NCBI GenBank assembly: GCA_013115145.1
Contig: JAAPAO010000058.1
Coordinates: 34,994 to 98,993 of the forward strand
Direction: 5' to 3'
DNA from: Perkinsus chesapeaki ATCC PRA-425
Lineage: Eukaryota > Protista > Perkinsozoa
DNA length: 64,000 nucleotides
Both the position numbers and the translations under genes were made by a program. The notes beneath the pieces were generated by a model that was not told the DNA's origin, searched no databases, and worked only from the letters and a program-made list of their open reading frames with translations. Positions within the stretch are counted from its first letter, which is position 1. Each line of letters begins with the position of its first letter. Of this stretch, positions 7,769-40,875 are shown piece after piece.

Positions 7769-8097
7769 TAAAGTAAGCTGGCAGCAATAACCATCAGCCT
7801 CTATACGCCCCAAAGAGGAAGAAGCCGCTCTACTATACAGCAATACTGCCGATACTGCCGAGATCTAGCGAAATGTGAAGACAATACCTCCAACATCATA
7901 ACACAATACTGATGACTGCAAGCTAGTGGACGACTTTCCCAGCTCGAGACTGTGATTGTTTCTGCGTCACATTTGTAAAAAGCGCTCGCCCAATAAGTTA
8001 TTGCACATACGCGGCGCCACCGTGATTGTCTATTTTGTTGTTCCTAATTAGTCAAAGGGATATTAATTAAAAACTCAATGCCCCGTTGATTATAAGG

Positions 8098-9834: not shown

Positions 9835-9965
9835 TACAGCAACTTTACTCAACTCAGCGCCATCAGGGGTCAGACGACTATAGTTCGACTACTGTAAAAA
9901 ATAAGCTATTGTGCATTTAGACTAATACCGAAACATCATCAACTTGTTCGACACTACAGGGCCTC

Positions 9966-12368
9966 TCAGTTGGCAGGGTGGCCAGCTCCACGGTGACTCG
10001 GCCTCAAATCGATTATACAAACCGAAATATCGTCGTGGAGCCTCCGGCGCTGATTCCCCTGCGGCAGAGCCTGAAGCTCCGCCAAAGTCTTCGCGCTCTT
10101 CTTGGCCGCTCTATTCAACACTTCACTAGTTAATGCCTCGGCAACTGAAACAACAAGGGTAGCAAGGCTATCGGCACGCTACTCCTAATCGTTAATAAAA
10201 TATTATCGAGCTGCTACTAATGGACTCTAGAGCACCGAATTGATGACAAGCCTAGGGTTTGCCCACAGCCCAACTTCCTTACCAGAGTTAGCAGTCCAAT
10301 TGCTATCATCCGGCAGCAGCAACCGTCGTATAAACCCTACAGCCTCTTCATCAGTAACATTATCCCACAAGCCGTCACTGCCAAGTACTATAAACCTGTT
10401 ACATGGCGGCTACCTTAGTGACAGCCTTCCTTCTAAGCTCCTACTTATCATCCTCATGGCGCGGATATACCATAACTTCGGGCTCACTAGTAATGTATGG
10501 AAAGGAGTGATCGAGAGGCTCAGTGCTGCTGCTGTTGTTATGAGCTGCTGACACTTTAGCCTCTGGGGGCGGTAGGAAATTCCGGCCCGATGTGTGATTA
10601 TAGAGGAACTCTGCCGACTGAAAGGAAACAAGACGTTGCTAAATACTTATTTTTACTGGTGTATGCTACGCACCACAAAAAGGAAATCTTGTAAGACTAG
10701 AACGCTGTTACTATAACAACTACTATACTATAACACACTACTATATACACTACTATAACAACTAAAAATAATACTATTAACAATATGAAGGATTGATATG
10801 ACGTATACGTCCACGGTATAGCATCGAGTAAGTGTGAAGACAGTGCGTAAGACCGACGTAAGATCTCTTAAGAAGCTGCTCACTTTAAGGTAGAAGTCCC
10901 CAAAGCTACGAGTGGGCTGCAGACGGCCTTTAACGTAGCAGCCAGAATACTTGGTGGAATGCTCCAATCGTTCAAGCTCAACAGGGTAACCAAGCCAGGA
11001 CTTTACGGCCAGCCAACCACCTATCACATCACCACTCCACCACGGCCGCATGGCCTACACAAGTAAGCTCACTCTTAGGGACAGCCACTATAACAGGTTC
11101 ATGCCATTCCTTCCTGCATCTGCAGCAGCAGCAGTCAACACTACTACTATATCACAATAACTGATGTTATTACCGGACAACATTATCCTCAAAGGGATGC
11201 TCCATCTCCAGCCTCCTCTGCTCCCGTATATCACTGGCATTGTGCTGCATATTCAGTGCCAAAGCTGGGCGATCCTCTCTATAAAGAACCTTTAAAGGGG
11301 AAGCAGCTGTAAATCCAACCCTCCCAGCGAGACTACCGCCTTGCAATCTCCAGCATTCGCCACAACTATGCTTGTCTGCGTTATCAGCACCGCCAGTCCA
11401 CAGGCGCCTGTCTTAACTGGCTGGGAAAATCCCAACCTAAGGTAGCCTTCAAACCGATTGTTTGGCCGGCTCCTGTTACTTCTGAGCCTCCCTGGCATGC
11501 TCCTCTAGCTCTTGGTCTGCTACCCTGAATGCCTCCTTACAAGCAGACTCTATTACTCTAGCGTCTATGTGACCAGCCTTCTGTGGAAAACGAGTGGCTA
11601 GCAGGGATGGCAGGTGGCCACGGAGATACCTGAGAGGGAATACAGTGAAAGGATAACTATCGCATCCAGTTACTCAGCCACTTGCCATCCGCCATGGCCA
11701 TCGAAAACACAAGCACAAAGGGTGCCACCGGGGAACTGCTTAAGAGCCAAGCGATCCTCCGACGGGGCGTTTGCTGCGTATTGATGGCAACCCACGCGAA
11801 TGTTAATCACCGGTCGAGGCGGAGCGGGCTGAGCGGTCTGACAGTGGAGGTGCCGCTTGATAGCGTAGACTCGTCATACCGTTATAAGCATCGGAGGGCC
11901 CTCTACTGTGGAGACAGCCCCTTGTGGAGGAGCCTGCTCACACCGCGACCGTCGAGCAACCTACACTGTAGTGGAGCCGGATTGGAGTTGGACAGACTAT
12001 TACCTCTGCGACCTTAACAGCTGCTACTACTGCCGCAGGCATCCATACCAATGCGGGCCGAAGTAGACCCGACATGTTAAACAGTTAATTCAAAGCAAAA
12101 GCAAAGAGTTATAAATGACTGATGCAAAAAAGCCGCATATTAGTACATACCGCAAAGCCCTGGCCAGCATGAAGAAAACTATGTCACGATCCTGATCGGG
12201 TAGGTCTCGAACGCAGAAGCCCTGTGGTCGATAGGAGACAAAGCCCTCGGAAAGTTCCATCATTATGTTTCCTGCAGACACACTGGCATAGGAACCTCCC
12301 CCCGTGGGCCGAGAAGAACACAACAGGAATAGAGGGTAGCCATAAAGAGACAGAGCTCTGCTAAGCAC
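9966..12368 (-). CDS. PP2C/PPM phosphatase (PDP-like), copy 2; 5' end uncertain
   Basis: Exons QYAANAPSEDR..CVFDGHGGWQVAE; VVANAGDCKAV; CYVKGRLQPTRSFGDFYLK; VLGSDGLWDNV; RRRLHDDISVCII. Stop at 9966. Confidence 0.88.
10709..10785. repeat. Low-complexity ACTAT/ACT/AAC intronic repeat
   Basis: Imperfect runs of actata/actact/aacaac inside a PP2C intron. Confidence 0.7.
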
Positions 12369-12559
12369 ACATAAGCCTCTAGAGTGACAATCGGTGATGA
12401 CAATTCACTTGATAGGTCCTCTGCAGATGCAGGGCTATATAATAATAACATCCTAATATCCATAGGGTGATGATTCATGGCAATGGTGGCTATGTTGCTG
12501 TACTCAATGGTAGTGGTGACAATATAATAATAATAAAGTACTTGACAAAAATGGTAGAG

Positions 12560-14773
12560 CTAGAGTCGAACTATAACTACTGTAACATCATCATGGATGT
12601 TCCTTCTAGTCCTGCCAGGCTGCATACGCCGGACCGAGCTAGCGCTTAATTTAGCCGACTGTGCTGCCTGTTCAATGACCTATCATATATCTTCCTATAC
12701 ATTCCACCTTGAGGCCCTACTCTAGAAACTAAGGCCTCTGCTGCAGCCTGTGGCCCCTCTCGCTCAAATACGTCCACAGCAACGGAGACAATGTCCGGAT
12801 CGGGAAGGTAGTCCCATAGGCCATCAGATGCCAGTATCAAAAACCTACTAACTATTAGCCGCCCACCAACAGCAACGCAGTACATGTCCCTAGTTGGATC
12901 CCTCTGTTCAGTTCTAACATCGGGGGTGGCTGATATATATGGCGGTGTGAAGTTTGGTAATGGGTTATCTAATAGACCTCATTCCCTCCACCACAGCAGC
13001 AGCAGCCCACGCACTACCATCCTCATCCTTCTGTTCATGTGGGTAGGGTGCAACTCTGGCTACCCTGGCAATATCCATATCCTAAAGAGCAGCACCAGCA
13101 GCTACGGGATAGCTTAGTCCGAGCCGCGAACAAACGCACTATCAATGACACAGTGCTTGGCTTATAAAGAAAAGGCCGAGGAATTGCTGCCCAATATTCC
13201 ACCATATGGTCGGAAGATGTTCGCCATTCTACGGCGACTTTAACGAGAAAGTAAGTTCTAATCTTTACTCATAACGATTAGAGTCTGTAAATATCCCGAC
13301 TAACAGCTCACCTCACCAAAGAAACACATTTGTCAGCTGAGTGCGCGGTGCTAATAACATGGCACACACTGACCTTAAAATAGAAGTCCCCAAAGGCTCG
13401 TGTAGGCTGAAGTCTTCCTTTAACATAACATGCTCCCCATCTCGTACCAACTGTTTTACCCTCACTGTCTGAAAAGCCACCAAGTGAGCAGATCACCAGA
13501 GGTGTCTGACTACCTAGCAGACGCTACCTACCACTACAGGGCGTTCCGACAAAAAAAGGTAACACTGTAAGCCATCGTATCCCGATAGCACATCTCAGCA
13601 AATAAGTTACTTATTCTTGCCGGAACACCCTGTACTACCCAAATTACCTAACTCGATGATCTTCTGCTTACAGTGGACCAGATCTTCCTCTCCGGGATGT
13701 TCCGCAATCAGCCTTTCCTGTTCAGTCGGTGAATCTGCATTATGCGCCGCGGTCAGCCAATCAACCTCGATGTTATCAGGGATCCCTGCAACCTAAGATT
13801 CCCCCAAAATATTCGCCTTTGCCTCACCTCGTAAAGTCAAACTCTCCGGGCTTCTCTTGCCGTCAATTTCCCGCCTCACTCGCATTGCTCTGCAATCCCC
13901 CAAATTCGCCACACAGTAACTGTCTTCCCCAAGCAGCACCGTCACCGCACACGCGCCCGCCTGATCCGCGCACACTCCACAACGTCGTCCAGCATGAGCC
14001 AGCAGCCCACCTGCATCTTCGTTAGTGTAGATACAGTTATCTTAGGTGGATGATTCTCCAAATTCCCACCAGCAATAGCTCGCCCATGCGCTAAGGGGCC
14101 GTCCACCTATACCAATGCTGCAAGCGGACACTTTGCTCCTACTGCTTCACCTCCCGCCTGGTCCAATCCAGTAAATCGGCCTCCAGCTCCTTGTGAGCCT
14201 CAAGCATTACACTACTGAGATCGAACTCCTTGGCCTCTTGGCCAACGATAGAATACATAAATGCTGGCATATACGACGCTACAAAATCAGCTACATGGGA
14301 CCCGCCATGGCCGTCAAACACTCCGGCCAGGATAACCTTGCCATCACTCGGCACCTATGCAAAGAACCTCCAACTTTCCCAGATACTAGCATTACCATTG
14401 TCCTTATAAATCGATCCTCATTAGGGTTGTTGCTGGCCACAGAGCACGCCCCAACTATATAATTCATCCTTACAGGATTGTCATAGTGTCTTTGGACTTG
14501 TGGGCCCAGTTCGACCTATAGTGTGGTAAGATCCCCAAGAGGTCCACCTACTCTTACCCGTATCCTCTCAGTGTGTGTCCGTCTAAGACCCCTTCTAATA
14601 CCTTTCCTCGCCGTTATTATCTCATCCCATTCCTCAGCCAGTGACGTCTTATTATCACCAGCCAGATATCCCAAAGGCCCAGTGTACACACTAGCAGCCC
14701 CTGCTGAGAGCACAGCTGCCACCGGCGTGCTAAACACACGAGGGAAGGCACTGAATGGCCGACTACCCCACAT
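12560..14773 (-). CDS. PP2C/PPM phosphatase (PDP-like), copy 1, possible mitochondrial presequence
   Basis: First in-frame ATG at 14773 (MWGSRPFSAFPRVFSTPVAAV). Exons VASNNPNEDRF; GVFDGHGGSHVA; VANLGDCRA; CYVKGRLQPTRAFGDFYFK; LASDGLWDYL; RRNIHDDVTVVIVRL*. Confidence 0.9.
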
Positions 14774-25629: not shown

Positions 25630-28600
25630 ATGAACGATGATGATGCGGCTGATGGGCCCGTGCAGGACTCGGCTCTGACTGCGAGTGGTGCCGCCACAGG
25701 CACTCAGCAAAAACAGGTGTGTCTGCCTATATGTTGTATAGTGTATCTATTTCATCAGGTTCATAGGTTCATAGCCGAGCTTCAAGGGAAGGAAGAGGAG
25801 GCTTGTGCTGCATTGAAGACAGCAGTCTACCGTTGCCGCCAGGGGGATTTTTCTGGCCTCAGTACGTCTGCCTTTAACGCTACAGAGCGACAAAGTCTCC
25901 AACTCTCAGAACGTTACGTTGTCCTGTCGCCAGCGTGTGGTGAGCTCTTCACCCTCGCTGAACGAAAGGATCAGTCGGAGGCTGGTCGGACCATCAGCAC
26001 TACTGCCCTCTTCCTAGTGGAGCTGCTCGGTACGGAAGGGTACTCAGCGGAAATTGTCACTCAAGTCCCGAATGTTCAGGTTGGATACTGTTGGGCTGTG
26101 TTGAGGGGAGGTTCCCGAGCTCCTCGGTGACCGGCAATGCCGTCTGCCGTGGCATATTAAACTCCTCTACTATGTTTACTTCGCGCTGTCTATTCGCAGT
26201 CTTGAACACCTCCAGGGACTGGGCTCTCATCGGGGCCCTCAGGCTCCTCAAAGGTGGTGGCATCATCCACTGCCATTAAGGGATAGTTAGACTTTCGCTC
26301 AGGCCTCTTCTCGTTTTCCCCTCGAGTGGCTTTACAGACCAACACTGCTGTGGCCAATTGGACGGTCACTCGAGATGCCAAAGGCACGGCGGCGAACGAC
26401 ACAACTGAGCATGGTTGGAAGGCGCTTTCCAGGCTGCTTGGGCGACGCAGGGTTACTGTAATTATAGCGAACGAACTGCTGCTCGAAACGATTGCTCCAG
26501 GCCGAGGGCGACACTGTTAGAGAGCACGGCCTCCATCTGGCCGTGGCCATCTTGAAGGCCGCCGAGACTAACAAGGATCTCGCCGCTCAACTTGTCCTTC
26601 ATCCGGTAGCAGTACTTCACGCAGTACTGGAAGAAGTGTGACCATGTCAATGCTTAGATGTGGCGACCATTCCTCAGCCGAGCGTTGGCTGGTAGCGGCA
26701 ACGAGACGTGCGTGGCTCCTCAACAACGTGGCGAAAACAACGACAATCGCCCACGGGACGTAACTATGGCCTTGGAGAGGATGCGCCAGGCTGAAGTGGC
26801 AGTGCTGGAGCAGTTGGGCCACTTCCTTAGGAACGCTAAGGTGAATCACTCTGCCATCTAGAGCTGTCCATCACAACTTTTATTCAGTCCCGCCGGACCC
26901 GCCTATTCACTGACCAGGAGTTCTTCCTTCCCCGTCTGTCCCGTGTGGTGGTGGAAGCCACTGACGAATCCGTTCTGGATGCGGCCGAGGCACTCTGGAC
27001 TTCGATAGCCACGGACACTGAGCTCTGGTCTGGAGATATGAACAGCCTCGGTATCGCTCTAGCAGCTATAAAGCCACCTTGCGACTCCCAGACTAACATC
27101 CTCTCCGAGGCCCTGTCTGCGCACAAGTCACCGGAGCTATGGCACGCAGTCGCAGAGAAGTCATCCCTCTCCTTATCACCAACGCCATCTTTACGGTGGC
27201 TCGCAGCTGTGGCATCGGCCGTCGAATTGCTAGATGACCCAACTCCCTGTGAGGCTCCTCTGCTGCCGTCTTGCCTGAACAGATCTGAGCTCACCGCCGG
27301 CCTGTTGTTCGCTGGCAAGGACCGAGTACTTGTCCGTACAACCACTCTAGGTCTCATTACCGCAGCCCTGAAAAGATTGACTAGTAACCACGTCCAGAAT
27401 ATTGCGGTAAGATCGCGCCTTTTTCGTTGAAGTGTTTTAGGCTACTTTTCAGGTGCTCAACGAGGTCGCTAGCATCCTCCCCGATATGCAAACGATCCTC
27501 AACGTCAAACCACCTTCCACGTCCACGAGCGCTCCCTACCTCCTGGCCTGGTCCCAGTGCATTTGCGCCTACCAGGAGGCTCTGCCCGGACGCTTCCTAC
27601 AATGCAAGTTTGACTGGGGCCGATCCCTTATCGAGTGCCATGAGCCCGTTCAAAGGGCGGTGCTGCTGCCCATGACCACACGGGTCCTCGCCAGCTTCCC
27701 GCTGGGCAAGAGCAAGCTCGCTTGGCTTAGACACCTCGTCGAGACTGACGCAATCGACGAGTTTTCTGAAAGCCTTTACGCCACTGGTCTATTCAATAGC
27801 CAGAAAGAGGCTCGGCACTGGGCGAGCTTGCCCACCAAGCCCGAGAGGCTTTGGGTCATCTCCGTCCTGCAGCAACTGGCTCAGCATCCTCTATTGCCAG
27901 TTGACACCTGGGCATCTGACTTCGTTAAGCAAGCTCTAACAGGGAAGCCCTCGCCCCCTCCTGGCAGCTGTTGTGTGGCTGATGCCGTGCTGTTGTTGGT
28001 ACAGTCAGGAGAGGTCCCTATAGAGGAGTGGAGGCGCTTACTCGGTCAGTACGGCAACCAGGGAGACCTGCTCAAGGACCTGGACTTGTCAAGTTCCACT
28101 AGCGACCTCAACTGCAACGAAACCAAATCCCGTTCACTCGATCCCTTAGACAGTTTGATCGCCCGTGCCACCGATGGTAGCACTGACTTGTCAGCTGCCG
28201 CCCAGTCCCCGACGCTCTTGGCGGCTGCAGTTGACGAGCTTTCCTATGAAGGGGAGTTCTCTGCCGCACTCGACATCATCTCGTCGGTGCCCAGTAAAGG
28301 GTACGATGTATTCGGCCTCGACGGTGTCCTCGCTAAGAATCCTGCCCTACTCTCCGCCATTGCCAGTGCCGATCCGGAACAGTTCCGCCACGGTTTGCTC
28401 TGGGTCCTATCTCCGAGTGTATTCGTACAAGTTGCTCAGTACCGCAGTGCCATTGCCTTCGAGACCGCTGACTACTTACAGCACAAGCCCAAGAAGCTGA
28501 GGAAGAAGTGGGGACCGCAGCGCTTCGATCGCTCCGTGGTTGGCGCTTGTTGTGCTTTGGTTGCACATGATGGCGATGAGAGGGCCCAAGCCCTGGCCAA

Positions 28601-30972
28601 TGAGTTCGGTCCTATATCGATGGAGCTGGACCAACTACCTCGAAGGCTCCTCCCTCGTTTGCCCTCACGGCTCATCGACATCAGCTCACTGAGCACCGCT
28701 GCTATCATTGCCGAGAACGACTCTGCTCTCTCACAGTGGTGGGTTGACGGAGGCCATCTAGATCTCGAAGACGGGTCCATGACAGATGATGTGCTCTTGG
28801 AGATCTTGGAGACGACCACCCTGCCGGAGGCCAGTCTGTCTGACCTTGTGAAGTCTGGTAGAATAACTCCATCGAACGCTGTTGCCGCCGGAAAGCAACT
28901 CAGTCGGCTGGAAGAGGTCAAAGAGAGCGTCCGCGAGTACTGGTATAGCAAGGTTGTCCCTTCCCTACCCGACCCAACGCTTCTTGGCGACGCCAGTACC
29001 GTCCTTGCTATGGCTTACAGTCCCTGCGAAGGCCACTATGAGTTGCTACAGCGGCTAGTGGGGCTTTGGGGCCTTAGTCGCTCCGAAAACGACAAGGCCT
29101 TACTAAGAATGATACTGGAGATAAGCTGCATGCATGAACTCTCCCGCAAGGCTGAGTATCGTCCTGACTCTAGGATACCACGTGCCATTGCCAAGGAGTG
29201 TCATAGGTTACCCGTACCAGCAATATTGTTGGATAACAAGTACGCTCGTGAAGCCACGTCTGATCTATGCTTGGATTCCTTTCAGCTTGTCTATGGTTAG
29301 CTCCGAGCCGTCCGAATCCCTCGACATAGACGCCTTCACTGTTTTCACTGCCGGCCGGATTCGGCGAGCAGATGCCACAACGACTGATGAGGACTGGCAG
29401 AACTACACGCCAGCAGCCGAGTTGGACTCGCTCGCCACAGAGCTTTGCTCCAGTGGCCGTGCGCTTGGAGCCCTACTGGTCGCCACTTCGAGTCGAGATA
29501 AGATCGTCAGAGACCTGTCCAGAGATGCGCTTGGTCGGATTACCAGCTGCCTGGAATTGAAGGTTCAAGGCCGCGACCAGAGCGGCATCCGACTGGGGTT
29601 CCGAGACGCACATGAGGTAACTCTAACCTGCATCTGTGCCAGGTGTATTGGCATTGTTTCGCCAGGTGCTGTTTCTCCTGCATGCCTACCTCAACTCTTT
29701 GCCCGAATCGACGGACCAGCCATCGCCATCAGTGCTGGCCCATGCTGTAGCGCAAATGGCCAACGTGGTGGTGCGACCTGAGTCCCCTGAGTACGAGGAG
29801 GTCTGTCATTCCCTGCTGGCCAGGTAGGCTCATCATTAGCATCTATTCAGGCTAGAATGCTCTATTAGGCCAGCTTTGGACACCACAGATGTGCCCCTTT
29901 GGTTTGATCTGTTTTACTCCAAAAGCGTCACCAACTGTACCCACCATAGACGTTGGATACTGCAAGTGCTCACTACACCTACTCATCCGGACTACATCAC
30001 ACCAGGTCGGCGAAGGGGGCTCGCTGGTAGCTTTAAACCGCTCTGTTAGATACTGTCACCGGGCCTTTGGGGAAGCGTCGCGTTCCTGAGGCTCTGATGG
30101 CTCTTACTGCCGATGTCACCCAGACTGATATCCAATTGGAAAGCTACTCCCTCGACATTGTAAAGAGACTTTAACCTCACTAGCTTGTCCTTACACACTC
30201 CGTCTTTAGATGTACCACATCATTCAGTTTTACTGCTCGAGGCCAGCAGCACTCGTGAAGTTCGTGAAGAACCACGCTGTTGTAGAGTGGTCTTATAACC
30301 TCCTCCGGGACAAGGGCAATGTAAGGCCTCCCGTCCTCTTGGCTTACCAGAGTACCCCTTCAGGTGGAAGCACTTCGGTCCACGAGTCTGGACATAGCGA
30401 GTCTACTTCTTGCCAAGCTGCCTGCGCATCCTAATCTGGTTGGGTTACTCGATCTCTTCGCGGATCTTGCGGACACATCACGGCTTCACTCACTGGCAGC
30501 TACCGTCCTACCGCGGTACATACGATGGGCTACCTCAAAGCTAGTCGACAAACTAGCTGTGATGCAGTTGCCGCTCACTAGCCTGCTTCGCATGCTCTCC
30601 CAAAGGCCCACCGATCCTTGCTTGATGAAGTCGGTTGTTGCATCCCTAAAAGCTACCACAACTACCAAGGCTCCTGCGGAATTGGAGACTGCTTTCATCT
30701 CCGTCTGCCGCTCGGAAACCCCTGGCGCCATCGACTTAGCACGGAGAGCATCTGGGTTGATGGGATTGACGTGGAAGTCTCGAATCGCAATCGCCAACAT
30801 CCTTCTTCGTGGCAACAAACGAGCCCTCCTAAGTCTGCCCGTGGATGCACTGGAAGCCATGAGCCGACTGCCCACCGTAGAGGATCTGCCCGACTGGCCT
30901 GATGAAGTCGATAGGGATGTTATCGAGGACGCAGAGACCCTCATGCGAGCTGCTATCAGTGCCTCAGCTTAG
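25630..30972 (+). CDS. URB1: URB1/Npa1 nucleolar pre-ribosomal-associated protein
   Basis: Very large helical protein. Its C-terminal exons LPGVLALF..AHAVAQMANVVVRPESPEYEEV and TDVPLWFDLFYS..HRRWILQVL..DY..GRRRG resemble the NopRA1 domain. Confidence 0.7.
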
Positions 30973-31489
30973 ACGTATCTACTAACGTATTTTACCAATG
31001 TTACTCTTGAATGGATTTCCCATCCTCGAATGATTCGCGTTGTCAGTATAACTATTTAACTCAACTCTATCATCACGTGTACGCCTCTAACCTCTACTAC
31101 TACATCTACACCTACATGACAGATTCAACGATTGTGGAGTGCTACGGATAAAATAGTGAAAAGACGATGAAATAGTACAAATACGAACATCATTATTCAA
31201 CAACTGCTGCCGCTGCTGTCGTCTGTTTTTTAACTCTTCCAATAAACTACCATTTGGCGCTTTCCCTTCAAAGATAAGTGACATCGCTGTCGACTTTAGC
31301 AGCAGCAACAACAGGCAGACCAGAGCATCCATCCAACCACAGTGTTAAACAAGAATCATGCAGATCACTTGCTTGTGGCTTGTATGTCAAAGACTCTATA
31401 GAGCTTCGATCATCATCATCATGGTAGGGGTGTTGTTGATGTCACTACGACCATCAAGACGTATTTATTCTGACCAACCAGGCGGCGTC

Positions 31490-33721
31490 TCAAACTGCGG
31501 GTTCCTCCCGAGGAGGTGGCATGGTGAAGTCAGGATTGGGCATGAATTCATCCTTCACGAAGGTGTAGCTTACAACATGGGTACGCAGCCAATGGATCGA
31601 TTCGGTCTTCTTCCACGAAGGTTGTTTCTTGACCCAGTCGCGGTACATGTCGTTGGAAACAATAACACCATCCTTCTTTCTTGCATACTGGAGACAGTAA
31701 GAATCATCGTAATCCTAAAAGTGAACATATTGCCCACTTTTAAAGGAGCGTAAAGCAATCTCACCTTTGAAGGGGTGAGGGCGAGTCTGCCCTGAGTTTG
31801 CAGCTTGAGCAAGATGCCTATGTTATCCACCGGTATGTGGGTTGGTGCGGCCTTAATGCCATGTAAAGTCTGAACCTTCATCTTCTGAGCATTGCGAAGC
31901 TTAAACAACTCGTTACGGTCAACCAAGTAGTCCGGGAGAAACACCATCACCTAAGCCACAATAATGCACCCTCGACACCATCGGATCATCACACCTCGTG
32001 CCCCCGAGATACATAGTAATCGACACAGATCTGCAGTCCCTTGCAAGTGAACTGTTGTCCGCCATGTCGGTTAGCAACATTAGGCCCATCAATCAGCACT
32101 AGTGGCTTGTAGTCATCTTGAGCAGGGCTATCGCGGAATCGAACTTCTGGTGTATAGCTGTTGGTTGACGTTCCACTTGAACCATCTTCTAGAAGGTTTC
32201 CCTGAAGCAGCAGTCTCATTGGCCATATGCCTTCAATGAGAGCTTACCCATCTATCAGTGCCACTATTTTTGAACGTGCAAGCTCGGCGAACTGCCGTAG
32301 TTGGTTTCGCTCTTTCCCGTTCAACACTCCTGGATTTCCTTACATAACGCGGCTTTGCCCGCTTCACCTCCACCACCGGCTCCGAGGCCTTCCTGACTCC
32401 TATATCCTTCGTTATCGAATACATGCCGCGAGGCTTTGACTTAGGAGAGATATGTAGACAGATGCTCACCAGCCTGCTAGCCATCGCCGCGCTCGGATTC
32501 TCACTGGGTCGACCTGGAGTCATGGCTTTGCGGAATACGTCGGTTTCAACAGTGGACGCCCAAGGACTGTCGGTAACCGTGGCTGCGTACTTGGCACAAT
32601 GTGCCTCTACTATACCATCTACATCAGCATCACCATGCCAATGAGGTCCCATGAATTCAAGGCTAAGGAGAAGTGAGCACCATAGAGCAGAGGTCGATAT
32701 CCTATCAGCCTCCAGGACTGGTTCCAGAGCCAATGCTGCTCCTATCGACGAGATCAACGCCTTAACTGGCCCCCGCTCCTCTTCGGTTGAAGAAAGCGTA
32801 AGTGCAGCAGTTAGCAAGACCAACCAATGCCAAGTACCCGTTGAAGTCTTCGGCGGCTCGTCCACCATCACCAAACCAGCAAGCTTCAATGGCTCAGGAG
32901 CTTGTGATTCGCCCCGCATGCACGCCGTACACTGACTTAGGATGCCCTTCGCGAATGCCTGCGCTGGCTCCGGCACTTCCTTTTGGCGCCGAGCAGCGCT
33001 ATCAATTTTAGCAACTAAATGCTCTGTCTGTTCCCCACCACCAGCCGAGTCGTAGCGCAGAAGATCGTAGCAGATTTTGACGAGGCGTCTACGCTGGAGA
33101 CTGGAAGTTATCGATAGGAGGCCGACGGCTGGGGAATGACGAGGCCCCAAGTAGCGCACACAACGCTCGTAATGCTCCACGGCTAGGTTCAAGTGGCTTG
33201 GCTCGACAAAGCTGCCAACATACCTGAAGCATCCAACTCACGACCATCGGGTCAGATAAGTACCTCTCGAGATCGCCAAAGACAACCTCGAAGCGGCCGT
33301 CCAGGACACGCAGTACAGCAGCGTCACCTTTAGCTCCTTTGCTTTCCCCAATCCTCCGTCGTAAATCCGTGAAGTACATATTCACAGTCTTGGCCTGCAG
33401 TCTAAGCTGCTCCTTTAGTTCCTCACGTTTGCCGCTGCCTGCCTCTGCTCCCAGAGACCGCAGAGCAGCCATCGTTTCGGATAAAGGATCATACCTGCCC
33501 AAGGCCTCATGGCCAACCACAGCGCCGCCGCCCTACACTATCTTCCAGATCTTGCCAACTGCCCTCCCCTTCACTGCCTCAACGAACTTGTCCTTATCGG
33601 CGCTGGTCAAGGCCGTCTCATAGATGTCGAGCCTCTCCACCGGGCTGGTGGGGCGCGATCGATTGCTCCGAGGATCTTCGCTGGCCTCCTCACTGGAGGT
33701 CGAGCTATTACCGTCATTCAT
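31490..33721 (-). CDS. SMG6L: Smg6L-like NMD nuclease: EST1/SMG-type TPR domain + Regnase (Zc3h12a)-type NYN/PIN RNase
   Basis: Spliced VFGDLERYVG..LAVEHYERCVRYLGPRHSPAVGLLSI..RRRL..Y resembles the EST1/SMG6 GDxxRY..A..Y....P region. C-terminal LIDGPNVA, DYDDSYCL, IVSNDMYRD and SYTFVKDEFMP carry the Regnase-type acidic catalytic residues. Confidence 0.82.
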
Positions 33722-33874
33722 CAACTAACTTAACTGACTGCACCTGTTATACTGTAATGACCTATCCCAACGCAAAAGAGGTGGTTTAACAAAGCGACAA
33801 ATAATAATAGCAAACACCAGCACCACACCGCAGGTTGCTGTTGTGGATCGGCGGCGGATAAAACTGTATCATTT

Positions 33875-36800
33875 TTAGCGTCTCTGAGAGCTTCTGCGAT
33901 TGTTGCCTCGACCTCCTGAGCGTCCACCGCCACCTCGATCGCTAGACCTCCGGGAGTCTCCCCTGAATCTGAACCCAACAAATAGACCGCTGGTTGATGA
34001 CAGCTAATGAGGGCCTACCGGTCGCGGCTCGCACCACGGTGACTCGATGAACGACGGTATCCCTCATCGACCTTCCTATCTCGACTATGGTAATCCCGAT
34101 CGTCCCGATGTCTGCTGCCCGATCGAGACCGACTGCCACACAACCAAAACATCATCACCATACGTACCAATGGTTTTATTACCTTCTGGTGCCAGGCTCC
34201 CATCGATCAGGTTCATCCTCATATTGCTCACTTCTCCTATCCCTTCTATGACTCGACTGCCGGTGACTGCGCTCTCCCTTATCTTCCTCCTCGCCGTGAT
34301 GACGGTCTGGGGGGCTGCTGGCTCTCCGTCGCCTCTTGCTTAGTGTCGCCGCATTAACCGATAGTTTACATTCATGTTTACGCCGTGAGCCAACCCTCTC
34401 GCATGGTAAAGGATGACGGTCGTAGCTAGGCCTATTGGAAATAACCTGCCCCCCGGTCTGAGGCAGCCACTGCAGTGGACTGTCCGCAGTGATGTCAACC
34501 AAAGACAATCCCTCTGTGTCCGGACCTAATCGGTACCTCATGATGAAACGTGCAGAGTTCACTCGACCACCGGCGCTTTCGACACAATGGGGCCGGATCA
34601 AATCAACAGTTCCTTCACTAGAATTCTGCACCATCAACAAAGGCTCTTGATAATAGGGCAAGTAGATCGGCACCAAAGCACTTGCAGTGGAAGAGACCTT
34701 CGTTCGGGACACTTCTGTCCATTTACCATCAGCCAAGGGTAAATGAGCAATCACCAGATACCCTGGCTGTTCCAACCACGCCATGAAGACCTCCACTGGC
34801 CAGGTATTCACCGAAAGCCTTCGAGCAGCGTAGACGTACAGCGGCACCGGTCGACAAGCCGTTCCGATGTTACCGTTGGCTTTAGCCAGAGCCTTCGGCT
34901 TAGATATCTCGACGGTAGCCCTCTGAGGATCCGCAATGACACGAATAGAAGTGCCATGGTCAGCCGTGTGGACTATGAAGAATGTGCAGACTTGCTGCTG
35001 CTGTCCCGGGGCCTTCGAGTGATGGTAGAGCACCTCCACCTCACAGGAGCTATCGAAGAACTCCGGCTCTTGAAGCACGTCAACCTCTCTCACGAACTGC
35101 CAGGCCGTGGTGGGGTTCTGGACGAAAAAGACACCACCTTTCTGACTAGATCGGTGCACCGCCATAACGAACAAGTCGGGCTCGGTGGAGGTGCTGGTGA
35201 CAGGAGAGAACATGAAGGGATAGAAGTGGCATTGAGAGAAGGGCACAGCTTCATCGCCGAACTCGAGCAGTGTTGTCCATTGGTCGCAGTGCTGGCTGAC
35301 GTCAGCCGCGCAGACCTTGGTGGATTGATGCTTGGCGTCCTGTACCACCACAAAGAGGCATTCCCTATTGGGGGCCCATCTCAACGGAGTGACTCTCATA
35401 CTCTTCGATGAGCTTCGACCAGGAGCTATCACGCTACTTGGAAGGGCCTTCATGTCCAAGTCCAGGCCCTGCAAAGTTGAAAGGCAGCACGCTGCTCCTT
35501 TACGACTGCTATGGGCAGCAGTAGCAGTAACCTTGGTGGGGCTGCCAGAACTGCCATCAATCGCCGATCCACAGTCTTCTCTGACCCAAAGTATGCTGGT
35601 ATCGTTTTCCACCGGTCGAGGTGGCGGAATATTAACAGGCATAGGTGGCTCGAAGGGGAGCCTCTTGTCGACGAAGCGCCCATCGTAGCGATCTGGAGCA
35701 GCCAGGTCGGTGAGGGGCAGATCCATTGTGAGATCTCTGACGCTGCATTTGGTGACCCTCGGCACTTGCATCTGTCGGACTACCCGAGGATTCGGGCTCA
35801 TCACCAGCCGATCGCACGATAGGCCTTCAGATAGGTAAAGCCTCCACACCTGCATCGTCCCCGCTGCTCCAGCATCACCTGCAGATGTCGCCAACAAAAG
35901 AGGCTCCGGCAAGTAAGGAAGATAGACCGGGGCGATCCTCGTATGCGGAGAGGTGCTCAGCGTGACAGCGGCTACCCTCTGCCAGGAGTCGGTGGCCAAG
36001 GCGTTGAACTGGGGCAGCTTTGCTATACGCAGCATGCCACCAGCTACCCAAGCCACGTAAATGTGGAAGTTGGGCAGCGAAGAGTGGGACTCTCCAGAGG
36101 AGGAAGGAGGCAGGACGTAGAGGACCTTAAGCTTGCAAGATACGTCCACGTCACCGTTGGTGATAGAGCTGTTCACCTTGACCCAGGCAGCTGTGGGGTC
36201 GCAGATCTCCCTCAATGCACAAGCATCACCGTCCTGGATGAAGACGAATGTTCTCCCTTGCATATAAACAGGAGTGACTCGAACGTTGCATCTGACTCCA
36301 GGGGTCACCGACCATTCCTCTCCAGGAGCTATGTCCCTCAAAGGCACCCACGGCTGGTTCGGGGCGCTCACTTGGAACACTCTACCCGCACCAGTGGGAC
36401 GGTGCAGAGCCAGGACGATCATCAGATACTGGCCAGGAGAGTCTGGGGTCTCTCCGGGGGCCAAAGGAGCCCGAAGCATCATCGGCACCAACTTGGACTC
36501 TGCCAGAGCTTGGTCATCTCTGGTCTCGAACATCGTCGGCCACATCTCCATTGGACTATCCGACCGCGACACGCACATGCGCAGTCGGCCAGTCTGCTTG
36601 TGCTGGAGGATGACGAATGGCTCCTTCTCGTTGGACCATCTCAGAGGTGTGCACTTCCAGCCCCTCTCGGTAGGCTGGGCTGCATCAGGCTTCGATAAAT
36701 AAAACTGTTCACCTTCAGACTTCAGCGTCGACAGCTCACTCACGTCCAGGCCAGGAGGGTTCTTCAGTGTAACCATCACCGGTGTACTGGCAAGTAGCAT

Positions 36801-38819
36801 ATCCCCACTGGGGAGAGCACCACCATTAATGACTCCAACACCCGGCGGCGGTGGCGGCATGCCTCCAATTGGCGGTGGCGGTGGAGGCGGAGGCTGTTGC
36901 TGGCCTCCCATTGGTGGCGGTGGTGGGGGAGGGGGAGGCTGCATTGACCGACCGTAACCTTTACCACTGTTGGTCCTATGAACTGGCTTGGTCTCCTTAG
37001 CCCATTGCAGGACATGATCGACCAGCTTAGTGAACTCCTCTTTGGCTAGGGCAAGGACGTGCTCCTTCGGCTGGGGGCCAGGGCGACCGCTGTCGTAATA
37101 GACCATGATATGGACCCTTGGGTCGGTGAAGACAGAGCCATAATTCTTCATACTTCGGGCGGCCAAGGTAACCCTTGCCTTGCACACGGACGCGATCTGT
37201 TTCACATTCATACCAGACGGGCCCATGAGGCGGCTGAAAATGTTGTCGTGGCGGTAGGCGCCCATCGACCCTTGGAGCATCCTCTGGCTGTCGGAGAAGG
37301 TGACAACCATCGGCTCATCCATCGCCTGGGCCCCAGGGATGATCTCAGAAGCGAACTTGCCATCTATCGCGTCCTTGCAGGCCGAAGCGCCATCGTGGGA
37401 CTCAAAGAGAACATAGGCCTCGCCTCGGGACTCGGTCGGGGTGGCACCGCCATCACGGACGATGAAGACCTCCATGATGCTACCGTACTTCGACAGCGAC
37501 ACGCCGATCTCCTGAAACGAGATAAATCAATAAAGAAACAGCGTAGACGCATAAGACCGAAACCTAACCTATTTGGTATCTTGTTGCGCACGGCGAAGAT
37601 TTATTGCTGCCCTCAGGAAGGAGACATATCACATTCGCGAGGAGGGTTCTGGGGGCTTCCACCAAGAGGGTTCTGCTGCCACTGACTGCCAATTTGGGCA
37701 ACACAAGGCCAGGGGATCATCAATTCAGCCCGAGCTAGAAAGCCCAGGGCTTGGATCGAAAGAATCATGTAAAGTTGAAGCGATTTGGAGTGAAAGAATT
37801 GTTATGAGCTACTGGAGGTTAGTGATGCCAAAGTCGATGACGTTACATTATCTGAGATGGACTTGGGCAAGTTGCGGATGAAGAGCTCGTCATCAGACTG
37901 CACTCCGGTGGTAGTGTAGGGCTCTCCATCATATCTATTTTGCAGGTCTAACTCATCCACGTAAATCTGATAGAAAAACCGGATAACATCAACAACTCAA
38001 AGCCTTCCTTACCTTTTCAAAAGGCATGTGACTATTATTGACCCTTGAATGGTCTAGCTGATGAGGTGGAGGTGCCCCCATAGACATTCCTCCCGGGGGC
38101 GGTGGTGGAGGAGGCGGGGGTGTCGCCGGACGAGGATTGGATCCTGTCCCTTGACTCCGGGCCGGACTTCTGGACCTTTCGCGCCGTACAGCCTCCTACA
38201 GTCAGACCGTAAGGCTCCCCTCTCAGGCGTCCATAGTTTCCTTACGGCAATTGCCGACTTAATCATCTCCATTGCTCTATCAACCTTCGACTTTGGGCCA
38301 GTAACATCGATACGCCTCATGTTCATAGCATCAGGGGCTCTATCGATCTGAACGTGAGCTCCACTCTCGTTCTGGATGCCACTGATCCTCTCGCCGTTCC
38401 TCCCTAAATGGATAAGGCAAACCTGATTAGTCTATCCCTCCTGGATGATGCTGGCTGCACCATCATCATCATGGTGGTCTCGCTATGCCCAAGGAGCTTG
38501 TGCCGGCAGAACCGTTACTTAAAACTCAAAACAACGCGAAAGGCCATGCTCGTGGTCTAAGTCATGTTGGCCGCAGCCGGTGCAGCCGATAGCAGTAGCC
38601 GCAGTTCGTACGGAAAGAATAATAATGCTCACCAATAATGATGCCCGCGAAATCGTTCCTAATCAACTGATGCTCGGAGACCTCAGGCTCGGCAGGGGTC
38701 GAGGGGGCTTCAGGCTCAGCCGGCGAAGCGGACGAATTGGCGGCCCCTTCCACAGCAGCTAACGAAGTTGCTTCTGGTGGGGGAGTTCCTTGAGGAGGAG
38801 AAGGAGTCGCTGTTGACAT
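33875..38819 (-). CDS. Large RNA-binding protein: KH - RRM - SF1-type KH - Pro-rich - two copies of an unrecognised ~330-aa domain - RS/RGG tail
   Basis: KH1 AGIIIGRNGERISGIQNESGAHVQI; RRM ELFIRNLPK..RGEAYVLF; KH2 NIFSRLMGPSGMNVKQI..DPRVHIMV; 3.3-kb exon 34179-37502; final spliced exon RSSDRGGGGRSGGRGNNRRSSQRR*. Confidence 0.8.
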
Positions 38820-39354: not shown

Positions 39355-40875
39355 ATGAAGTTCCCTCGGTTCAGTTGGATGAGGCTGCTCGTACCACTCC
39401 TATCCCATGCCATCCCACTAACCATCGCTTCCCAACAAGTCCACTCATCAGTGGACTTCTCAGCATGGGAGGCTCTGTCTCACCGTAAGTTGTCGGCTGG
39501 CGCTGGCGAATCCAGCTCCATTCTGGCTCTCGTATTTGGAGAGTGCCTGTGCACCGGAGCCCTCGATTGCAACACCGAGGTTGATGGGTCCAGCGTCATT
39601 CCCCCCGCTCTGGACCTCTTAATATCCTTCATCATCATGCTTTACATGTTCAAGCTCCTTGGGTCCATGTGTGATGAATACTTTGTCCAATCCTTGAGCA
39701 GCATCTCAGAGGCCCTCAATCTCTCCCCAGACGTCGCCGGTGCTACCTTCATGGCAGCTGGCTCCTCCGCGCCAGAGCTCTTCACCTCGGTTATGGCGAC
39801 GTTTTTAATCGTCAATGAAGGAGGCGTTGGTACCATTATCGGCTCTGCCATATTCAACATCCTTGTCATTGTCGGGGCCACCTGCTTGTTCGCGGGACAG
39901 GCCCTTAAGATTTGCTGGTATCCGTTGGCCCGGGACACTACCTTCTATGTGATAGCCATTGTGATGATGACACTGTTCCTCCTAGATGAGGAAATTGTTC
40001 TTTGGGAGTCCCTGCTGATGATTATCGGCTACGTCGGTTACTGCACCTACATGAAGTACAACGACTGGATTGCCGCCAAGCTCGGCGTTGAGAGGTCGAC
40101 GCCCGTCCTGGATTTCCACGACAGCGTCCCTCTTCCAGTCCTCCCTGTCGATGGTGGCACTGGTGGTCTCTCCGACGGACCACGCAGTGCGCCGTCATCA
40201 CGGAAGTCTTCGTTAGAGGCTCCGGTCGGTCATATGATGCGCAGAGCAAGCACACATTTCGGGGAGCTCAAGTTCAGGGCGAAGGTTCACACCGAGACCA
40301 CTCTCATCCAGGAGGCATCAGTCGAGGATAAAGAGGGGGAGGAGGAGCCGCGGCTGTATGACCCTATACTTGTTCTGTGGAGGAGGACCATGCCATCTGA
40401 CGACCACTATTGGCTGCTCTTCACTGCCTCTGTGCTTTGGATAGGCTTGCTGACCTACCTTATGGTAGATGCATGTAACAGGATAGGTTGCCTGTTGAAT
40501 CTGCCAGTCCTCGTAATGGGCCTGATATTCCTAGCAGCCGGCACCAGCGTGCCCGATGCCCTGGGCTCTATTGCGGTAGCACGCCACGGTGAAGGCGATA
40601 TGGCAGTATCGAATGCGATAGGCTCTAACGTCTTCGATATCATGCTTGGCTTGGGGGTGCCTTGGACACTTAAACTGGCGATGGGCAAGGAGGTACTCTT
40701 TCCGACCGCTAACGAAGAGCTTCCCCGCTATATTATAATATTGGTTATTGTATTGGCATTGTTCCTATTCTCTGTAACAGTTGCCAAATGTGTTTTGAAC
40801 CGTTTAATGGGGGTCTGCTTATTAGGACTGTACTGTTGCTATATCGTGTATGCCTTGGTTATGGCTGCTACCTAG
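39355..40875 (+). CDS. NCKX: K+-dependent Na+/Ca2+ exchanger (NCKX/SLC24), intronless
   Basis: alpha-1 repeat VAGATFMAAGSSAPELFTS, GTIIGSAIFNIL; alpha-2 repeat LAAGTSVPDA, MAVSNAIGSNVFDI. Confidence 0.95.
   Translation: MKFPRFSWMRLLVPLLSHAIPLTIASQQVHSSVDFSAWEALSHRKLSAGAGESSSILALVFGECLCTGALDCNTEVDGSSVIPPALDLLISFIIMLYMFKLLGSMCDEYFVQSLSSISEALNLSPDVAGATFMAAGSSAPELFTSVMATFLIVNEGGVGTIIGSAIFNILVIVGATCLFAGQALKICWYPLARDTTFYVIAIVMMTLFLLDEEIVLWESLLMIIGYVGYCTYMKYNDWIAAKLGVERSTPVLDFHDSVPLPVLPVDGGTGGLSDGPRSAPSSRKSSLEAPVGHMMRRASTHFGELKFRAKVHTETTLIQEASVEDKEGEEEPRLYDPILVLWRRTMPSDDHYWLLFTASVLWIGLLTYLMVDACNRIGCLLNLPVLVMGLIFLAAGTSVPDALGSIAVARHGEGDMAVSNAIGSNVFDIMLGLGVPWTLKLAMGKEVLFPTANEELPRYIIILVIVLALFLFSVTVAKCVLNRLMGVCLLGLYCCYIVYALVMAAT

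Follow-up and report, generated by a model that had tools for sequence, protein, structure and literature searches.

A Protein of Perkinsus With a KH-RRM-KH Head and Twin Beta-Propellers, Encoded Next to a Smg6L-Type Nuclease

The Locus and Its Gene Model

The window, by which we mean the whole 64-kb stretch of DNA that was analyzed, carries on its minus strand two co-oriented genes of Perkinsus chesapeaki, one for a large RNA-binding protein and, directly downstream, one for a nuclease (Table 1). The first was rebuilt as a coding sequence of 7 exons in which 6 of 6 introns are GT-AG and the frame is open; its 1394-aa product is collinear with the P. olseni ortholog. A preliminary description, made from the sequence alone, had given the gene the same extent and strand (33875-38819, minus) and the architecture KH-RRM-KH, two homologous beta-rich domains, and an RS/RGG tail, which Pfam, alignment, and the gene model confirm. 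Reading the tail requires that two 50-bp introns be spliced. The gap between the genes, which had been put at ~150 bp, is 153 nt, counted between the end of the stop at 33875 and the nuclease ATG at 33721; the spacer holds a T-rich tract and several AG dinucleotides shortly upstream of that ATG.

Table 1. Coordinates of the two genes and their parts, numbered from the first letter of the window
Feature	Position	Strand	Basis or remark
Whole gene: KH1, RRM, KH2, poly-Pro, propeller 1, linker, propeller 2, RS/RGG tail	33875..38819	-	Spliced model
Exons 1-4	38819-38633, 38403-38246, 38195-38013, 37966-37847	-	Rebuilt CDS
Exons 5-7	37511-34183, 34132-34019, 33968-33875	-	Rebuilt CDS
Exon 1: ATG, low-complexity Pro/Ala/Ser N-terminus, first KH1 strand (..FAGIIIG)	38633..38819	-	Matches P0002 residues 15-53
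Exon 2: main part of KH1	38246..38403	-	Pfam KH_1, E 4e-10, 39.7 bits (cut-off 21.5)
Exon 4: start of RRM (RNP2 LFIRNLP)	37847..37966	-	RRM continues in exon 5
Exon 5, first part: remainder of RRM, KHDC4/BBP-like KH2, poly-Pro linker	36801..37511	-	Pfam and dinoflagellate alignment
Propeller 1, including N-terminal closing strands	35649..36785	-	Residues ~458-838; alignments, AF2
Inter-propeller linker (disordered in AF2 model) and propeller 2 (residues ~890-1255)	34395..35615	-	AF2, fold searches
Basic RS-rich and RGG-rich C-terminal tail: end of exon 5, exons 6 and 7	33875..34394	-	Stop TAA 33877-33875
Spacer, stop codon to nuclease ATG, 153 nt	33722..33874	-	Read from sequence
Smg6L-type nuclease gene, multi-exon, co-oriented	31490..33721	-	Est1/SMG6/SMG7-like N-terminus and Zc3h12a-type NYN

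The public P. olseni annotation divides the orthologous locus into products of 773 aa and 463 aa, but we consider it very improbable that our model is an artifact joining a KH/RRM/propeller-1 gene to a propeller-2 gene, with no tandem duplication inside one protein: one 3329-bp exon (37511-34183) encodes without a break everything between the RRM and the end of the second propeller, both propellers also lie in a 1082-aa open frame (P0001) of a further Perkinsus assembly, and in all proteins of the metagenomic clade A/B described below the two lie within one intron-free ORF. The analysis corrects the split gene model of that annotation.

The RNA-Binding Head

KH and RRM domains are well-known binders of single-stranded RNA. 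In the window protein, KH1 passes the Pfam KH_1 gathering score (its counterpart in the ortholog P0002 reaches 56.1 bits), and its GXXG loop, IIGRNGERI, is assembled across the exon 1/2 junction. The RNP2 motif of the RRM is followed in exon 5 by an RNP1-like GEAYVLF, and the exon-5 part passes the gathering score of Pfam RRM_1 (E 9e-7, 29.1 bits, cut-off 20.7).

KH2 had been likened to that of SF1/BBP, which overstates the case. It matches the Pfam subtype KH-I_KHDC4-BBP at E 2e-4 and 21.4 bits, below the cut-off of 30 and over profile positions 5-37 of 76 only; the P. olseni ortholog, at 31.0 bits, is just over that cut-off. The other features of SF1, a U2AF-binding helix-hairpin and CCHC zinc knuckles, gave no Pfam match at E<=0.1 in the pieces of the window protein or in P0002.

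The Twin Propellers

Behind the poly-Pro linker stand two homologous domains of ~340-380 aa each. The repeats as originally drawn, 35649-36659 and 34419-35399 (both minus), align by BLASTP with 26% identity over 336 columns (E 2e-25). They are real, but their starts were misplaced: the true start lies ~40 residues earlier, at an LSTL strand common to both. The motifs first noticed in them (TPLRW, YLPY..EPLL, and D.T.D.PL) are invariant or nearly so in 12 repeat copies from 6 proteins, and Arg, Trp, and Tyr positions are strongly conserved in every propeller copy. In a tree of the repeat copies, the first and second domains form separate clades (D1, support 98/96; D2, support 100/99). The duplication is older than the split of Perkinsus from its uncultured, compact-genome relatives.

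No family had been recognized for the repeats in the preliminary description, and neither Pfam nor PDB profiles supply one. The Pfam repeat families WD40, Kelch, YWTD/Ldl_recept_b, BNR, FG-GAP, EPTP/LVIVD, and PLL have no match at E<=0.1 in the window protein, P0003, or P0004, and a PDB sequence-profile search with the propeller family returned nothing even at E 10. The fold is another matter, and here the early guess of a beta-propeller-like unit holds in both AF2 models and fold searches. Propeller 2 modeled alone (m93235bfb8c59) has a pLDDT of 78.6, a pTM of 0.82, and ~23 strands; the model of both domains has a pLDDT of 72.6 and a pTM of 0.76, and its residues 1-382 (propeller 1) are all-beta. 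Foldseek lists 173 propeller matches at E<=1e-3 with TM up to 0.55 (0.5-0.55 in the structure atlas). VIA lists 587 chains at Z>=8, the best being the UmbA4 propeller (Z 16.7), with YWTD, sialidase, and kelch propellers at Z 13-15. Each repeat is modeled as an all-beta propeller, probably with about six blades, a number that we take from the strand count and from top matches that are mostly six-bladed.

Judged by these models, the matches are to generic propellers only and the fold is an ordinary, common one; what is new is the sequence family, its architecture, and its linkage to the nuclease. The six-bladed YWTD/LDL-receptor, sialidase/BNR, kelch, and PLL-lectin propellers, together with EPTP/LVIVD, have the same fold (VIA Z 12-17 over 250-314 aligned residues) at a sequence identity of 4-12%. 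Most of those families are extracellular or enzymatic; the Perkinsus-family propeller, in contrast, is fused to intracellular RNA-binding domains.

Some side observations can be recorded here. Two leads to known families came up, both weak: one LVIVD/EPTP protein in the large profile search (E 8.6e-5), and PLL-like propellers, for which a language model gave a feature score of 0.90 at low recognition. A motif that recurs in the blades, [S/D/N]-P-x-x-x-W, may occupy the position of the sialidase Asp-box.

Distribution and Relatives

The propeller family is rare, with 36 representatives among 1.84 billion proteins. Its named members belong solely to Perkinsus and the dinoflagellates Noctiluca, Polykrikos, and Amoebophrya, and the large profile search found no ciliate or apicomplexan member; going by the sequences retrieved, the family is so far restricted to Dinozoa (Perkinsus and its relatives, and dinoflagellates).

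Nearly all long members have KH and/or RRM domains N-terminal to the propeller. The dinoflagellate proteins (e.g., Amoebophrya sp. A120 CAD7961605.1, and transcripts of Noctiluca and Polykrikos) are true homologs, with propeller matches at E 1e-11 to 1e-31, and consist of FHA, 4-5 KH, RRM, one propeller, and Agenet; they thus have one propeller where Perkinsus has two, extra FHA and KH domains at the N-terminus, and Agenet in place of the RS/RGG tail. Another member has six KH domains, a propeller, and WW, and yet another RRM, KH, and propeller. Residues 53-356 of the window protein are colinear with the dinoflagellate proteins over their last KH, their RRM, and the stretch that follows it (E up to 3e-33). 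To call the architecture lineage-specific, as had been done at the outset, is too strong, for dinoflagellates have the KH-RRM-KH-propeller cassette as well.

A metagenomic clade, A/B, from uncultured organisms with compact genomes, has the twin propellers standing alone, without KH, RRM, or RS parts, and at 28-39% propeller identity to Perkinsus. No fusion of propeller and NYN was found among the 36 representatives in a Pfam scan of nearly all the long ones.

The Downstream Nuclease Gene

That the neighbor encodes a Smg6L-type nuclease was proposed early and is well founded. A profile of six orthologs matches EST1A/SMG6 (4um2, E 4.5e-8) and SMG7 (1ya0, E 3.8e-5), and its closest NYN structures in sequence are those of KHNYN and ZC3H12A-C (E ~1e-16). 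Pfam RNase_Zc3h12a (PF11977) is found on the exon pieces 31992-32243 (E 4.7e-9) and 31493-31714 (E 4.6e-16). The window nuclease sequence alone yields no Pfam EST1 match; its N-terminal exons are colinear with the nuclease of the compact-genome contig L001, including GDLERYL versus GDLYRYL. The catalytic Asp/Asn residues of the NYN domain are intact in the window (LIDGPNVA, DYDDSY, and VSNDMYRDW) and invariant in relatives.

Tetrahymena Smg6L has the same two-part architecture, an Est1 domain plus NYN, and the same catalytic residues. It is needed for nonsense-mediated decay, and its top co-purifying protein is Upf1a (Tian et al. 2017, PMC5499736). The likeness concerns the Perkinsus neighbor gene and not the KH-RRM-propeller protein; the Tetrahymena paper mentions no KH, RRM, or propeller partner.

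Linkage of the Two Genes

The propeller gene is followed by the NYN gene, adjacent and co-oriented, in Perkinsus (the window and P. olseni) and in all clade A/B contigs examined (L001-L003, L005, L007-L010, and L012-L015). None of the other neighbors seen in clade A/B (cullin, Mnd1, MFS, Arf, Maf, and dynein) is present in the 64-kb window. A lack of conserved linkage to Smg6L, which the preliminary description had named as evidence against itself, was not observed, for the two genes are paired again in a distant metagenomic clade. The linkage is not universal: no nuclease lies next to the propeller gene in Amoebophrya (L004) or on contig L006. The independent lineages with the adjacency number only two, L005 not being a third because its upstream Maf gene is common to it and clade A. 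Because the clade A/B propellers, although they have no KH or RRM, keep the nuclease as neighbor, it is propellers and nuclease that the conserved link joins.

The 153-bp spacer itself is not exceptional, because other spacers of the orthologous P. olseni locus are ~300 bp. Genes in the compact genomes generally lie close together, and in Perkinsus the spacer is only moderately short. We found no credible intron in the compact relatives that could skip the stop of the propeller gene. A single retained pair among many lost neighbors could be a remnant of the order of genes in an ancestor. The occurrence of the pair in two distant lineages suggests that the two proteins work together.

Proposed Role

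Our best reading, to which we would give an even chance, is that the protein is an RNA-recognition adaptor for Smg6L-mediated decay. The KH1-RRM-KH2 head would bind single-stranded RNA, as expected of its domains, the two propellers would serve as a docking platform for partner proteins and possibly for RNA, and the RS/RGG tail would add non-specific RNA and RNP contacts. The adaptor would thereby select transcripts and deliver them to the endonuclease encoded directly downstream. We count in its favor that the propellers travel with KH/RRM modules in nearly all long members. On this reading, the two proteins would bind each other, target RNA, and act in surveillance or decay.

Among the closest precedents are the animal proteins KHNYN and N4BP1, which likewise combine a KH-like module with a Zc3h12a-type NYN endonuclease. 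They do so in one polypeptide, whereas in Perkinsus KH and NYN are in two proteins, split by the stop at 33875 and the spacer; the Perkinsus nuclease has an Est1/14-3-3-like N-terminus where KHNYN/N4BP1 have KH, and its partner has two propellers and an RRM that they lack. The Perkinsus pair might supply in trans what KHNYN/N4BP1 hold in one chain. Alternatively, it might supply what KHNYN obtains from ZAP, the two being reported as an adaptor and nuclease pair (PMC11670115).

A possible but less favored account is that the protein is a scaffold for nuclear pre-mRNA processing or RNP assembly, for example, in cis- or spliced-leader trans-splicing, with propellers that dock spliceosomal or RNP proteins and a Smg6L adjacency that is a relic. 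The RS/RGG tail and a KH2 of the KHDC4/BBP subtype would be as compatible with splicing as with the adaptor; SF1-specific features, however, were not found. Multi-propeller proteins of RNA metabolism (SF3B3/Rse1, CPSF160, DDB1, Trm734, and Elp2) rank first among the Foldseek matches of the two-domain model, but the likeness of these tandem propellers is generic (TM ~0.2, rmsd >20 A), domain arrangement and blade number are not common to them and the model, and the window protein has no Pfam match to MMS1_N or CPSF_A. The FHA and Agenet domains of the dinoflagellate orthologs point the same way as the scaffold, as does the missing nuclease neighbor in Amoebophrya and L006; against it, the clade A/B proteins have lost every RNA-binding and RS part and kept the nuclease neighbor.

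The adaptor idea can be pressed further, to an obligate, lineage-specific partner of Smg6L that selects surveillance substrates in Perkinsozoa, the two genes being expressed as one unit; we regard this as unlikely. The twin-propeller protein would then replace the missing SMG5/SMG7 or exon-junction-complex route, and a dicistronic precursor resolved by spliced-leader trans-splicing would make the locus a small eukaryotic RNA-decay operon.

More doubtful still, by analogy with Gemin5, whose tandem WD40 propellers recognize snRNA, is that RNA is recognized by the twin propellers themselves, with KH and RRM as auxiliaries, the target being a lineage-specific RNA feature such as the spliced leader or its cap. 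The conserved Arg, Trp, and Tyr could be read in this way, although conserved propeller tryptophans are usually structural, and the propellers do persist without KH/RRM in clade A/B. Perkinsozoa and dinoflagellates are characterized by spliced-leader trans-splicing (PMC9399869), a range that equals that of the family. The resemblance to Gemin5, however, is limited in both structure and sequence to the generic fold. Such a role would be compatible with the adaptor.

Significance

What emerges here is a new domain family, a predicted six-bladed propeller that is known so far in Dinozoa only and that nearly always shares its chain with KH and RRM domains. Should its linkage to the nuclease be only a relic, we would be left with an RNA-binding protein of restricted lineage and ordinary fold, of modest interest. 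The question addressed is how targets of nonsense-mediated decay are chosen in alveolates: in Tetrahymena, Smg6L is the NYN nuclease of a pathway that does without the exon junction complex and lacks SMG1, SMG5, and SMG7 (PMC5499736). As a conserved neighbor of Smg6L that in Perkinsus carries KH and RRM domains, the propeller protein is a concrete candidate, open to test, for the RNA-recognition partner still missing in Perkinsozoa.

Gene structure and RNA-binding head

The gene under study was rebuilt as a seven-exon model with a product of 1394 aa; its six introns, of 46 to 335 bp, are all GT-AG, and its limits are exactly those of the preliminary description (see table). The closest named protein is a hypothetical protein of P. 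olseni (83% identity), and the DNA of the window, from an intron-bearing eukaryotic genome, follows the P. olseni locus collinearly, with 67-76% identity. From the N-terminus, Pfam places KH_1 in exon 2 (E 4e-10) and RRM_1 across exons 4 and 5 (E 9e-7), directly followed by a KHDC4/BBP-type KH domain (E 2e-4) that falls short of the threshold in the window protein and narrowly exceeds it in the P. olseni orthologue. A poly-Pro linker then leads into two repeats. These had been described as homologous domains, and they do align with one another (E 2e-25; 26% identity in 336 columns); the RS/RGG tail reported with them is likewise present and reads correctly only with two 50-bp introns removed.

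An artefact in which two separate genes were joined is contradicted by a single 3329-bp exon across both propellers. The public annotation of the orthologous P. olseni gene (JABANP010000166.1) splits it into FOZ60_003276, a 773-aa product that breaks off within propeller 1 and has a non-homologous tail, and a second product of 463 aa. Both propellers lie on one continuous exon in the window and in another Perkinsus assembly.

Coordinates of the features discussed, in the window unless another contig is named
Feature	Position	Strand	Details
Twin-propeller gene	33875-38819	-	Seven exons, 38819 to 33875
Blade motif [S/D/N]-P-x-x-x-W	34395-36785	-	Protein residues 540, 604, 659, 726; 961, 1020, 1147
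Smg6L-type nuclease gene	31490-33721	-	NYN domain on two exon pieces
Stretch matching a P. olseni gene annotated with NopRA1	~28185-31010	Opposite to nuclease	Collinear with P. olseni
Na_Ca_ex family ORF	39355-40875	+	506 aa, intron-free; Pfam E 4e-54
P. olseni orthologue (L011)	8001-12993		Annotated as two genes
Site at member P0009 (L006)	3889-4388		Apparently cut short by a frameshift or short intron

A common fold in a new sequence family

Neither Pfam, searched with the repeats and their standalone homologues (no family at E 0.1 or better), nor a PDB sequence-profile search with the 36-sequence alignment of the repeat (no match at E 10 or better) returned a relative. With the same alignment, AlphaFold2 gives a confident all-beta model of repeat 2 (pLDDT 78.6, pTM 0.82, about 23 strands); the model of both repeats (pLDDT 72.6, pTM 0.76) has a disordered linker between them. 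The earlier suggestion of propeller-like units was right, and every structural search returns beta-propellers: Foldseek against the PDB at a best TM of 0.55; VIA against 48,161 chains, with the UmbA4 propeller on top (Z 16.7) and YWTD, sialidase and kelch propellers, mostly six-bladed, next (Z 13-15); and the ESM Atlas with FG-GAP and EPTP/LVIVD propellers (TM 0.5-0.55). The matches from Foldseek/PDB, VIA wide/PDB and the ESM Atlas are generic, with no propeller family standing out, and against the multi-propeller proteins Trm734, Lgl2, SF3B3, DDB1 and CPSF160 the two-domain model likewise shows generic likeness only (TM about 0.2). From the strand count and the mostly six-bladed structural matches we infer that each repeat has six blades, which would be closed by the N-terminal strands preceding the TPLRW motif. 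The blade motif recurs in about four blades per propeller copy, with instances such as SAPNQPW, CDPTAAW, QNPTTAW and LADGKW; the Asp-box of sialidase-type propellers occupies a similar position. The fold of the repeat is thus common and its sequence family is new.

Distribution and age of the duplication

Among 1.84 billion representative proteins, a profile search picked out 36 members of the propeller family with E values of 1e-3 or better, and 25 of them reach 1e-10 or better. Those with names come from Perkinsus and from the dinoflagellates Polykrikos kofoidii, Noctiluca scintillans and Amoebophrya sp. A120. The dinoflagellate proteins (1400-2200 aa) carry FHA, four to five KH, RRM, one propeller and, in some, Agenet; further architectures are FHA, RRM and two propellers; six KH, a propeller and WW; and RRM, a BBP-like KH and a propeller. 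In the window protein, residues 53-356 (KH1 through KH2) align colinearly with the dinoflagellate proteins from their last KH through the RRM and the stretch behind it (E up to 3e-33). The KH-RRM-KH-propeller cassette as a whole therefore goes back to the ancestry of Dinozoa and did not originate in Perkinsus; the description of the architecture as lineage-specific must therefore be given up.

A second group of proteins, of 737-922 aa, consists of two propellers alone and is encoded on very compact eukaryotic metagenome contigs; the N-terminal extensions of two family members (P0010 and P0011) do not resemble the RRM-KH2 part of the window protein. A maximum-likelihood tree of 35 propeller copies, built without the short copy P0015:810-1006, has three clades, which hold all first propellers (98/96), all second propellers (100/99) and the single copies of the dinoflagellates (97/94). 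The duplication is therefore older than the split of Perkinsus from the compact-genome clade.

On the compact contigs (up to 390 kb, from uncultured eukaryotes with extremely compact genomes), neighbouring genes are 35-120 bp apart, and the introns, which resemble GTATGT..TAG, are about 40 bp long. Their dynein heavy chain has its best named relative in the dinoflagellate Polarella glacialis (35% identity), which fits a dinozoan or perkinsean origin without settling it; we read the contigs as those of uncultured dinozoans, probably Perkinsea. The conserved gene order on them is Maf, twin-propeller, Smg6L-like, followed in clade A by the axonemal dynein heavy chain.

The nuclease and its linkage to the propeller gene

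A gap of 153 nt separates the stop codon of the propeller gene, whose last base is 33875, from the next ATG, at 33721, which opens the co-oriented nuclease gene. The nuclease carries a Zc3h12a-type NYN domain (E 4.7e-9 and 4.6e-16 for its two pieces) with the Asp/Asn catalytic residues present, and over its N-terminal exons it aligns colinearly with the compact-contig nuclease. A profile of six compact-contig nucleases matches EST1A/SMG6 (E 4.5e-8) and SMG7 (E 3.8e-5) at the N-terminus and the NYN structures of KHNYN and ZC3H12A-C (about 1e-16) at the C-terminus. The Smg6L-like label first given to this neighbour holds. Tetrahymena Smg6L has the same Est1-plus-NYN architecture; nonsense-mediated decay depends on it in that ciliate, and Upf1a co-purifies with it (PMC5499736). 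A word-based search with the nuclease profile returned metagenomic relatives only, and is no gauge of the wider distribution of the nuclease.

Linkage of the two genes is conserved: the order is the same in P. olseni, and an NYN gene directly follows the twin-propeller gene on the same strand in every clade A/B contig examined (L001-L003, L005, L007-L010, L012-L015). On L001 the two genes, both intron-free, lie at 10001-12214 and 12292-13884. The other clade A/B neighbours (cullin, Mnd1, MFS, Arf, Maf and dynein) occur nowhere in the 64-kb window, and propeller identity between Perkinsus and the compact-genome clade is 28-39%; the pair has outlived all surrounding gene order. Clade A has wide internal synteny, and the independent lineages with the linkage number two; L005 is counted with clade A and not as a third, because Maf lies upstream there too. 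The pair was not found in Amoebophrya (L004) or on contig L006. In P. olseni the spacer between the two genes is 132 bp, as against about 300 bp elsewhere in the locus; in compact genomes short spacers are normal, which limits the weight of a short spacer there. No family member scanned with Pfam is fused to NYN, and the spacer of the compact relatives was rejected as an intron fusing both ORFs, there being no GTATGT donor before the stop codons.

On contig L006, the next ORF after P0009, of 152 aa, continues propeller 2; DUF1604 lies upstream and CLP1 downstream, with no NYN gene. Downstream of the window nuclease, the stretch at ~28185-31010 is collinear with a P. olseni gene, on the opposite strand, that is annotated with a NopRA1 domain, so that Perkinsus-level synteny spans at least 18 kb. 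The Na_Ca_ex ORF, divergently upstream of the propeller gene, has no counterpart in the otherwise collinear P. olseni locus; in Amoebophrya (L004) the family member has a homologous gene immediately upstream (39% identity across 128 aa), and this shared neighbour could reflect chance or an old neighbourhood.

Proposed working

The standalone propellers keep their nuclease neighbour after loss of every RNA-binding part, and the conserved relation is therefore that between propellers and Smg6L. In the simplest model, to which we give roughly even credence, the propellers would form a docking surface that holds Smg6L, or a Smg6L complex with Upf1. In Perkinsus, the KH-RRM-KH head would pick the RNA for the nuclease so held; going by the established properties of such domains, this head and the RS/RGG tail would bind RNA. 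Such a pair of adaptor and nuclease would be comparable with ZAP-KHNYN, or with KH and NYN as they are joined in one chain in KHNYN or N4BP1. The main rival, possible but less probable, sees the protein as a scaffold for RNPs or splicing and its place next to Smg6L as a relic. That the propellers read RNA directly, which would be compatible with either an adaptor or a scaffold, is improbable.

Significance

Smg6L, the KH, RRM and NYN domains and the propeller fold are already known. What is new is the conserved gene pair of propeller protein and Smg6L, together with a propeller family that lacks sequence matches in Pfam and the PDB and that, as far as the sequences indicate, is restricted to Dinozoa and constantly associated with KH and RRM modules. 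The window protein combines RNA-binding modules with a propeller platform and may act as a nuclease adaptor. The compact-genome eukaryotes, possibly Perkinsea, may merit separate study, and the propeller protein is a specific, putative candidate for the missing RNA-selection partner of Smg6L.
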